DNA of 63,264 nucleotides, the filler included, from Sluysia triapertura (taxonomy: Eukaryota): assembly GCA_046118255.1 (NCBI GenBank). It is 5 parts of 5 records of this genome, joined end to end, with 100 filler letters (N's around TTAATTAATTAA, not from the genome) between each part and the next. Parts side by side here need not be neighbours in the genome. Positions count along the whole stretch, not along the records: positions 1 to 12,047 come from JBJNIA010144832.1; 4 more parts are not named here. One strand, written 5' to 3'. Shown one piece after another: positions 10,056 through 12,047 of the stretch. The notes beneath the pieces are model-generated. The model had not been told where the DNA came from. It made no database searches and saw nothing but the letters and a program-made list of their open reading frames with translations. How positions within the stretch are numbered: position 1 is the stretch's first letter; the number at the start of each line of letters is the position of its first letter. Both the position numbers and the translations under genes were made by a program.

Positions 10056-10721
10056 TTAGTTTTCAAATTGTTGAACTCGGATTTCAACTTCTTTGTTTTC
10101 TTCCTTCGATGGAAGAATACTTATTTTATCCACTAAACCTGAAGCATTTTCAGGTTTTATCATTATGCTCACTTTGAATCCTATTATACCCGTCTTGGTT
10201 TCAACTGAACGTACTGCAGATCTTATTAATTCATTCGCTGGATTACCACTGCTTATCATCCATCCAGCGTTATATTTTGTTGATCGGGCACGTTGCCCGT
10301 TGAGCTTGCCACTAACTATAATTTCACATCCAAATACTTTATCCGAATTTTTTATTTGACTTAAGGCACCTTGCACTGCCCTACGAGCTGGTACACCTTG
10401 TTCAATTTTGTTGCACAAAAGAGAAGCTATAATTGCAGGACACATTTCTTTATCTTTAATCTGATCTACTAATACATTCAAAGGTTTTTCTTGCAAATTT
10501 AAGGAATTTGTAAGTAACTGTTGCATTTCTTTAATACGTTTTCCTTTATCACCAATTGCCAACCTACTTTTTAAAACTTTTACTATAACTTCAATTTTGT
10601 GTGGTGCAATTCGTAAGTCAAACGAATCATACCCACAGTCTGCAAACTCCTTCTTGAATAATGATTCAATCTGAGCTTTCATTAAAGCATTTGCTATTTG
10701 GCTTTTTACTATTGTTTTCAT
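10056..10721 (-). CDS. RPS3: 40S ribosomal protein S3 (uS3), intronless, highly divergent
   Basis: 221-aa uninterrupted ORF with the KH-domain motif IGDKGKRIKE, PARRA, GCEIIVSGKLNGQRAR, GWMISSG and GIIGFKVSIM. Confidence 0.95.
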   Translation of the reverse strand: MKTIVKSQIANALMKAQIESLFKKEFADCGYDSFDLRIAPHKIEVIVKVLKSRLAIGDKGKRIKEMQQLLTNSLNLQEKPLNVLVDQIKDKEMCPAIIASLLCNKIEQGVPARRAVQGALSQIKNSDKVFGCEIIVSGKLNGQRARSTKYNAGWMISSGNPANELIRSAVRSVETKTGIIGFKVSIMIKPENASGLVDKISILPSKEENKEVEIRVQQFEN

Positions 10722-12047
10722 TTGAAATTTGTATATTTATTAAAATAAATTATTTAAACAAAACTATTACTTCATTTAATTTTAAAAAATGATACATATA
10801 TTTAAAATACATTTTGTAATCAATTAATTTTAACATTACGTATTTATTTTAAATAAATATTATAAGCAAAAAATATCCAAAAAATTAAACACTATTTAAA
10901 TATTATATTAATGTGTATTTTTAAAAATATTTGTTTCGTAAAAATTTAATTTTTAAATTAATACAACATAAATTGTATGTAAATATATTTCTAATAGGGA
11001 AATATATTAACTTACAATTTATTTTGTATTAATTTAAATATATATTGAAGTTAGATTTATTATGTGTGTGTTTAGGTTATTTGTACCTTACGTTATTTTA
11101 AATTTAGAATAAAATAAATTAAAATAATTAAGTAATTAATTAAAATCTTAATTAACTTAAGAAAAATTGCGTTTGTGTGAATAATTTTTTAACGGGAAAT
11201 GCTATGGTAAAACTTTAATTGTGTATGTATGTAAGGTTTGATCGAGTTGATGCGAGGAAAACTTCCGCATTGAACAAAGTCTTATGTTAATTAACTCTTA
11301 ATATAAAATTTTCATATTTAGAATGATGAAGAGATGATGAATTTGGTAGGGAGTGTCTAGGGAAATCATATAAAATTCATCACACCTCATCACATAAAAA
11401 CATCACTTACTTACACAGAACATTAAATGAACTACTAGATCATTCAAAAAACAAACATAACCATTGTCATAGTTATCATGAACTATAACTATTGTTATTA
11501 TAATTCCAGTCATACTAAAATATATAATAATTATTAGGATTAATGTCGCATAATATAATTGCCACGATTGCCACATAATAACTTTCATATTAATATCAAC
11601 AATACTATTATTTTAAAACATATAATAATTATGTTATTGTTATCATTATGATATCTTCATCTTTATTATTAACCTTTCTTTTCTTTTGTTTTCCCAGTTT
11701 ATGTGTATATTTATTTATGTGTTAATCGATAAAGTATGCATTTAGTATCTGTTTAAAAATGTGTTCTTTTAATAACTCCATCATTTTGTTGTGTTTATCC
11801 GTTTACTAATTTCCCTCTTTAATAACTAAGAAAAAATCAAATAAAACTAAATCTTGATATATTCTTATATAACAGTTATACAAATCAAATCGTTATATGA
11901 CAAATATAATTCTATAAATGAACTTAATTATACCATAGTTATAGTTATATAAATCAAACTTTTATATAGATAAAACACTTCTTTAAATCAAATTCTTTAA
12001 TAAATTATTGTCTAACTCTTTAAAAATCGCAGGGGTTACACAACATA

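Follow-up and report, generated by a model that had tools for sequence, protein, structure and literature searches.

A fast-evolving second type of uS3 gene, probably of host origin, in the genome of Sluysia triapertura

Introduction

The DNA analyzed here (the window) is a 63,264-nucleotide stretch of five joined pieces from the genome of Sluysia triapertura (assembly GCA_046118255.1), and its first piece (positions 1–12,047; contig C144832) carries an open reading frame for the ribosomal protein uS3 (RPS3) that departs strongly from the animal sequence. Few ribosomal proteins are as conserved as uS3, and animals normally have a single copy of its gene; the protein is located at the point of the 40S subunit where messenger RNA (mRNA) enters and where stalls are read out by ribosome quality control. 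The original prediction, made from the sequence, regarded the gene as microsporidian-like and proposed either horizontal transfer from an intracellular parasite or a fast-evolving specialized paralog. The locus thus raises the question of where such a gene came from and whether its product still belongs to the ribosome. The reading that we prefer, with a probability of roughly 0.55, is that the divergent uS3 is a resident gene of the host, a fast-evolved RPS3 paralogue predicted still to be used in the 40S subunit as an alternative uS3.

Structure of the divergent uS3 gene

The open reading frame lies at 10056–10721 on the minus strand, with its ATG at 10721 and its TAA at 10056, and its 221 codons run without interruption or intron. 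It is the sole long open frame of the piece, and the rest of the contig holds no intact gene, as the original prediction had stated. The encoded protein has an N-terminal KH_2 domain (31.2 bits; curated cut-off 22) followed by a Ribosomal_S3_C domain (71.7 bits; curated cut-off 34.1), which is the domain order of uS3, and phmmer aligned it end to end with every solved eukaryotic uS3 in the PDB (E 1e-27 to 1e-37). AlphaFold2, supplied with a 38-sequence alignment, returned a model with a mean predicted local distance difference test score (pLDDT) of 87.7 and a predicted template-modeling score (pTM) of 0.74, and Foldseek matched this model to the uS3 of animals, plants, protists and fungi (E about 1e-21; template-modeling score, TM, 0.78–0.81). 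Because the Pfam domains, the PDB alignments and the confidently predicted fold all identify uS3, the divergent gene is a real, intact and intronless uS3, as first claimed. Its coding features are as follows.

10056..10721, minus strand: coding sequence of the divergent uS3, 221 codons plus TAA (open reading frame, Pfam, phmmer against the PDB, AlphaFold2 and Foldseek, and dN/dS 0.17 against the copy on C183901)
10452..10664, minus strand: KH type-2 domain, residues 20–90, with the GxxG loop kept as G-D-K-G (PF07650, E 2e-7; alignment)
10164..10415, minus strand: Ribosomal_S3_C domain, residues 103–186, including R113, R144 and R146 (PF00189, E 7.6e-20; HMMER register to mammalian uS3)

Alignment confirmed the reported absence of KRKFVADG, TPTRTEIII and GLCAIAQAESL from the protein, and revealed that the N-terminal basic KKRK stretch is lost, the AQAESLRYK helix is rewritten, one residue is inserted ahead of the S3_C sheet, and seven residues are deleted from the C-terminal loop. 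The GKLxGQRA loop and the GxxG loop of the KH domain are retained. In the HMMER register to mammalian uS3, the mRNA-contact residues of the human entry channel, R116, R146 and K148 (PMC10201444), correspond to R113, R144 and R146. K206 aligns, counted from the PDB alignment register, with human K214, the RNF10/Mag2 quality-control ubiquitination site in a solvent-exposed tail that contacts RACK1 (PMC11604940).

Analysis of conserved positions, defined as columns conserved in ≥90% or ≥80% of 77 eukaryotic uS3 representatives, showed that the divergent uS3 keeps 17/24 and 28/55 of them, respectively. This is the lowest retention of 74–76 eukaryotic uS3 rows, under that of Enterospora and Nematocida. 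With 55 probably archaeal sequences added, the conserved set comprised only 12 columns and the divergent uS3 lay outside the 12 lowest-scoring rows; we accordingly dropped the general claim that it is the most derived at universal positions, which is valid among eukaryotes and fails once archaeal sequences are included.

The uS3 family in the assembly

We searched the whole assembly (619 megabases in 263,945 contigs) and found uS3-derived DNA in about 28 places on more than 20 contigs. One canonical RPS3 is present, on C142467, and consists of a 12-codon first exon, a single 34-nucleotide intron and the remainder in one exon (about 1524–1594 of the fetched locus L004, minus strand). A canonical spliced gene, which the original prediction had proposed to look for, thus exists, and the divergent gene is not the sole RPS3. 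The canonical protein is 65–70% identical to animal RPS3, with Schistosoma haematobium as its best named match, and a contig from sequencing run SRR33002330 is 84% identical to it; the host is an animal, probably a flatworm. Because this presumed parent gene is itself nearly intronless, little can be concluded from the intronless state of the divergent copies. An old pseudogene fragment of the canonical type lies on C226127.

The divergent type has a second intact copy on C183901 (3813–4469; hereafter the sister copy), also of 221 codons and 77% identical in amino acids to the window copy. A nearly complete copy on C114231 is dead, with 11 stops, and some 25 other fragments, at 71–95% nucleotide identity, are spread over more than 20 contigs. 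Comparison of the two intact copies gave proportions of replacement and synonymous differences (pN and pS) of 0.118 and 0.482 and corrected distances (dN and dS) of 0.128 and 0.77, hence a dN/dS of 0.17 (Fisher p 8e-19), and their identity at codon positions 1, 2 and 3 is 84%, 91% and 66%. Since dN/dS is this low and the changes are skewed to third positions, both intact copies have been kept by purifying selection over the long term, while sibling copies decayed. Six changes at positions conserved in ≥90% of the 60 other sequences of our tree set are identical in the two copies and were thus fixed before the copies split.

Alignment of window positions 10041–10851 with the sister locus (L002) by blastn (78%) extends 130 nucleotides past the ATG, but only 15 nucleotides past the stop. 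As for the marks of a processed retrogene, no A-run follows the stop codon and a promoter element of the ribosomal-protein type is present, although at a dS of 0.77 such marks could have decayed. Apart from these comparisons, a KH-coding piece of ~85–125 nucleotides (window 10533–10617) makes up a disproportionate share of the dispersed uS3 fragments: C149485 has it in six places, and it is also present on C231221, C157891, C213824, C184630, C32657 and others, as if it lay in a mobile or recombinogenic repeat.

Promoter element and base composition

The region upstream of the window copy contains two features.

10722..10851, minus strand: 5′ flank that aligns with that of the sister copy, probable promoter and 5′ untranslated region (blastn 78%)
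10751..10761, minus strand: the 11-mer TTGTTTAAATA, a putative host core-promoter element, starting 40 nucleotides ahead of the ATG (exact match)

The same 11-mer stands, exact, at −36 before the ATG of the sister copy and at −44 to −50 before canonical RPS3, both eS6 genes, eS8 and eS1; another exact copy was found at the eS8 pseudogene locus (L024), and uL3 (−57) and eL15 (−75) have it with one mismatch. Among the ten ribosomal-protein gene starts examined, canonical RPS3 included, it is exact at 8/10 and has one mismatch at 2/10. In the first 56 kb of fetched loci, searched on both strands, all seven exact occurrences fall at ribosomal-protein gene or pseudogene loci, and six of them are placed 36–50 nucleotides before an ATG. 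The sites in the fetched loci are L002 1462, L004 1638 (minus), L018 1965 (minus), L019 1405, L023 1407, L026 582 and L030 1403. Among control genes, the element was present at 0/4 tubulin and 2/4 HSP70 genes. From the ribosomal-protein starts set against these controls, TTGTTTAAATA is a probable core-promoter element of the host that is enriched at, but not exclusive to, ribosomal-protein genes. It looks like the TATA-like core element of this species' ribosomal-protein regulon; a full-text literature search for its core sequence together with ribosomal-protein promoters found nothing.

A 57-nucleotide stretch upstream of the window copy matches one upstream of canonical RPS3 at 78% identity, better than 99.7% of AT-rich background segments. 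We considered, and rejected, common descent of these two promoters, because unrelated ribosomal-protein promoters are nearly as similar (score 50 for eS6a versus eS1, compared with 56), and we claim only a shared element. The composition of the divergent genes (G+C content, GC, 0.34–0.36; GC at third codon positions, GC3, 0.24–0.28) is close to that of six host ribosomal-protein genes (GC 0.33–0.36; GC3 0.16–0.24). A second divergent set for eS6, eL15, eS8, eS1 and uL3 was not found in the assembly, which contains only canonical-type genes and pseudogenes of these families; the divergent uS3 is thus not the ordinary uS3 of a co-assembled organism.

The same families include two intact canonical-type eS6 genes (C193061:3419–3790, minus; C186502:4539–4910, plus) that share 76% amino acid identity, are saturated at synonymous sites, and both have a tiny first exon as well as the TTGTTTAAATA element. 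Old duplicates of ribosomal-protein genes are thus not unique to uS3 in this genome; among the six families checked, an extremely diverged form occurs only in uS3.

Phylogeny and sequence identity

The tree set comprised 62 sequences: the divergent pair, the host canonical RPS3 (exon 2 only, the 12-codon first exon not being joined), animals, fungi, plants, microsporidia, Giardia, protist-like sequences and probable archaeal outgroups. The careful tree was inferred under LG+C20+F+G4 with posterior mean site frequencies (PMSF). The stem of the divergent pair measures 1.55 substitutions per site. In all free trees (FastTree, the quick tree and the careful tree) the pair was left unresolved and was never grouped with microsporidia; the site-heterogeneous phylogeny including microsporidia that the original prediction called for has thus been run and does not recover the microsporidian grouping. 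The host canonical RPS3 falls inside Metazoa and in the quick tree adjoins Schistosoma. Removal of the deepest long branches placed the pair inside Metazoa beside an acanthocephalan (94/83), away from the longer non-animal rows. The approximately unbiased (AU) test rejects none of three constraints, in which the pair was placed with microsporidia, with the host canonical gene or with Metazoa (the last with a log-likelihood difference, delta lnL, of 12.5 and p 0.21). Phylogeny alone cannot decide the origin of the pair.

Pairwise identity of the divergent pair is highest to the host lineage, at 38–39% to the host canonical RPS3, 39–40% to the closest database relative of that gene and 41% to Schistosoma; microsporidia give 28–37%, and the remaining animals, the fungi and the plants about 31%. 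We also counted host-lineage-specific residues (n=21), defined as residues that the host canonical RPS3 and its relative have in common and that none of 18 slowly evolving eukaryotes has. Of these, 7 and 9 occur in the two divergent copies, more than in any of 42 other sequences (next best, 5). Several of these shared residues are not AT-driven changes.

Comparison with microsporidian uS3

The likeness to microsporidia that had been noted is not specific, as scores are flat across plants, animals, protists and microsporidia. Bit scores against the PDB were 131.5 for tomato, 129.2 for wheat, 127.8 for Encephalitozoon cuniculi, 125.6 for Drosophila, 120.9 for Vairimorpha, 120.6 for Plasmodium, about 118 for mammals and about 110 for yeast, and in the Foldseek ranking microsporidian uS3 chains came 38th, 44th and 47th. 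HMMER, run exhaustively against 1.84 billion cluster representatives, revealed no relative above 39% identity, and the named members of the ten best clusters were from hamster, vole, acanthocephalan, fig, yam, legume and almond. A word-indexed protein search returned one match, a fern protein of 36% identity that falls among plants in the trees and is uninformative; exact-sequence look-ups of both divergent paralogues gave no match, this genome's records possibly lying outside the database. The seven-residue stretch of the C-terminal loop that is deleted in the divergent uS3 is kept by microsporidia.

The original prediction had also taken an upstream hexamer as a microsporidian cue.

10725..10730, minus strand: AAATTT hexamer, 3 nucleotides ahead of the ATG (judged a chance occurrence)

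The hexamer is present where reported, but does not hold as a microsporidian signal. The window contains 42 AAATTT against 45 ± 6 expected from shuffles, and the hexamer is absent upstream of the sister copy. The promoter signal of microsporidia couples an AAATTT-like to a CCC-like motif beside the start codon (PMC2803860), and neither CCC nor GGG occurs between the hexamer and the ATG of the divergent uS3. The context of the gene differs likewise: genes are few and repeats abundant on this contig, the reverse of the compact genomes of microsporidia. With no specific microsporidian affinity by score, fold or tree, no microsporidian promoter signal and no compact context, the proposed transfer from an intracellular parasite finds no backing here, and the microsporidian flavor of the divergent uS3 is an impression created by a long branch and AT bias.

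Discussion

The results point to a duplicate of RPS3 in the host lineage that would have passed through a burst of change, with a stem of at least 1.5 substitutions per site and alteration of near-universal positions, followed by a second duplication to two intact copies and by purifying selection on both. Origin by duplication within the host lineage is in itself very probable; we favor it because of the pairwise identities, the host-lineage residues, the promoter element and the composition, together with the prior rarity of transfer of ribosomal-protein genes. The fast-evolving paralog of the original prediction is therefore the one of its two proposals that gained ground, through the canonical RPS3 elsewhere in the genome, the two selected copies, the host ribosomal-protein promoter element and the host-like codon composition. 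Transcription would start from the TATA-like TTGTTTAAATA element shared with the host's ribosomal-protein genes, and the protein may take the place of canonical uS3 in the 40S head, by the channel through which mRNA enters, which would result in a variant ("specialized") small subunit. A burst followed by constraint under a promoter of the ribosomal-protein type fits a neofunctionalized alternative uS3 that would dock at the 40S entry channel.

Several results weigh against this account. The LG+C20 tree puts the pair in a basal eukaryotic polytomy, weakly beside Giardia (85/33), a grouping that is a long-branch join. The constraint with microsporidia costs a delta lnL of 2.2 (AU p 0.43), and that with the host canonical gene 17.9 (AU p 0.16). 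A common AT pressure could account for part of the residues shared with the host lineage. Among 21 microsporidia-specific states (absent from slowly evolving eukaryotes) the pair has the most, 9/21, tied by P0155; one archaeal sequence and two further eukaryotic sequences reach 7/21, and since archaeal and other sequences also score high, these states look like common relaxed or ancestral-type replacements. Finally, the low retention at conserved positions could mean that ribosomal function has been lost.

This last point leads to the possibility that the host RPS3 duplicate now acts outside the ribosome in a nucleic-acid-binding role, with canonical RPS3 alone serving translation. Such roles of RPS3 are well documented (PMC11604940). 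The protein is the most derived of the 74–76 eukaryotic uS3 rows at conserved positions, six near-universal positions are changed and fixed in both copies, and the KKRK stretch and seven residues of the C-terminal loop are gone. However, the promoter element suggests co-regulation with the translation apparatus, the arginines of the mRNA channel and the lysine equivalent to K214 are retained, and the whole two-domain fold is predicted with high confidence, so that we consider an extraribosomal role, the leading alternative, possible but rather unlikely. A duplicate that was recently inactivated or never expressed, and whose frame stayed open by chance, would be in keeping with a genome full of dead uS3, cullin, tubulin, HSP70 and MAPK copies; it is nevertheless very improbable, since the 221-codon frame has stayed open in two copies at a dS of 0.77, replacement changes are five times rarer than expected, the identities differ by codon position, and the upstream element is conserved in both copies.

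The remaining alternatives place the origin of the gene outside the host. Horizontal transfer would have brought in a uS3 from a microsporidian, a microsporidian-like or another fast-evolving intracellular eukaryote, which then gained a host promoter and was duplicated, domesticated and placed under selection; it would amount to eukaryote-to-animal transfer of a core ribosomal protein into the germline. The AU test tolerates a microsporidian clade, the pair has the 9/21 typical states, the window copy shares 37% identity with P0127, a microsporidia-like sequence, and the gene is intronless. On the other hand, no search method prefers microsporidia and the free trees do not join them to the pair, most of the "microsporidian" states also occur in archaea and other long branches, identity to host-lineage RPS3 is higher (38–41%), microsporidia keep the deleted loop, and the gene has a host promoter element at the standard distance and host composition. 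Moreover, no other divergent ribosomal-protein genes accompany it among the five families searched, and intronlessness says little when the canonical gene has a single 34-nucleotide intron. We regard transfer as improbable. Contamination or a chimeric contig, in which the gene would be the ordinary uS3 of another AT-rich organism in the assembly, is conceivable in an assembly as fragmented as this one. Fragments of the gene are, however, scattered within dispersed repeats over more than 20 contigs, and in promoter element and composition it matches the animal's canonical ribosomal-protein genes. No divergent set of eS6, eL15, eS8, eS1 and uL3 to go with it was found, and a 12-kb contig that holds a single gene, repeats and a kinase pseudogene does not resemble the compact genome of a parasite; this explanation is hardly credible.

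A resident paralogue used as an alternative uS3 can be compared with known systems. With canonical eukaryotic uS3 it shares the KH_2 and Ribosomal_S3_C domains, the fold (TM about 0.8), the GxxG loop, the entry-channel arginines, the GKLxGQRA loop and the K214-equivalent lysine; it differs in its low identity (31% to typical uS3 of animals, fungi and plants, 38–39% to the host canonical protein), in lacking KKRKFVADG, TPTRTEIII and AQAESLRYK, and in its one-residue insertion, seven-residue deletion and retention of 17/24 conserved positions. Microsporidian uS3 resembles it in length (about 215–245 amino acids), in the loss of the N-terminal basic motif, in several shared relaxed positions and in the long branch, whereas by score, fold and tree it is no closer than plant or animal uS3, it keeps the C-terminal loop, and the combined AAATTT and CCC signal is not a conserved feature of the divergent genes, which lie in a large repeat-rich animal genome.

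Known animal ribosomal-protein paralogues, among them RPL10L, RPL39L, RPL3L and the germline paralogues of Drosophila, are usually 70–99% identical to their partners. As in these cases, an extra core ribosomal-protein gene is kept by selection beside the canonical one and may provide ribosome heterogeneity or tissue-specific supply. In contrast to them, the divergent uS3 is less than 40% identical to its partner and is changed at near-universal positions, and the divergent type has itself been duplicated and has shed many fragments. Rps27 and Rps27l are a further retained pair of animals (PMC10313321).

The combination of <40% identity to the canonical partner with purifying selection and a promoter element of the ribosomal-protein type is what sets this gene apart. 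If the protein is incorporated into ribosomes, it would provide an exceptionally clear example from nature of a small subunit with a different structure and would make ideas about specialized ribosomes directly testable in a probably parasitic, flatworm-like animal. The locus is also cautionary, since a very long branch in an AT-rich genome can mimic a "microsporidian-like" sequence and invite a false call of horizontal transfer.

Other features of the contig and the assembly

The G+C content of the piece is 20–29% throughout. Its other annotated features are listed below.

3246..3790, plus strand: MAPK7/ERK5-like intronless pseudogene, collinear with kinase subdomains I–VII (Pfam Pkinase E 6.8e-19; best PDB matches MAPK7 and MAPK4)
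7554..8513, no strand assigned: dispersed repeat of ~1 kb carrying a uS3 fragment (blastn against C227883, locus L010, 83–88% identity)
7929..8050, no strand assigned: dead palindromic fragment of the uS3 3′ end (repeat search; blastn to the sister copy)

The ERK5-like fragment of the original prediction is thus present, but as a pseudogene. The sequence and its three-frame translations show that the frame is interrupted by an in-frame TGA at 3408 and again by a stop after 3725, with a frameshift ahead of the DFG-equivalent; a 36-nucleotide intron between the two MAPK open reading frames was considered and ruled out by the in-frame TGA within continuous coding similarity. The CUL3-like fragment reported from the same contig could not be recovered: no cullin match was obtained at E ≤ 0.01, nor in the ten open reading frames scanned. 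A search for transfer RNA genes found none, and no human-looking contigs were found. In the palindromic fragment, 7929–7995 is a direct copy (82%) of 10096–10162 and 8007–8050 an inverted copy; the hairpin arms (7956–7995 and 8011–8050) are 93% complementary, and the structure is an inverted duplication of the last ~70–80 nucleotides of the uS3 coding region. A 153-codon open reading frame at 4217–4678 (plus strand) has a sub-threshold match to SAM_KIDINS220 (E 1.3e-4; 22.2 bits against a cut-off of 27). In the assembly as a whole, more than 150 tubulin-domain, 75 HSP70 and 45 cullin matches were found, many of them with stops, and these copies and dead copies of housekeeping genes suggest pervasive duplication of gene fragments.

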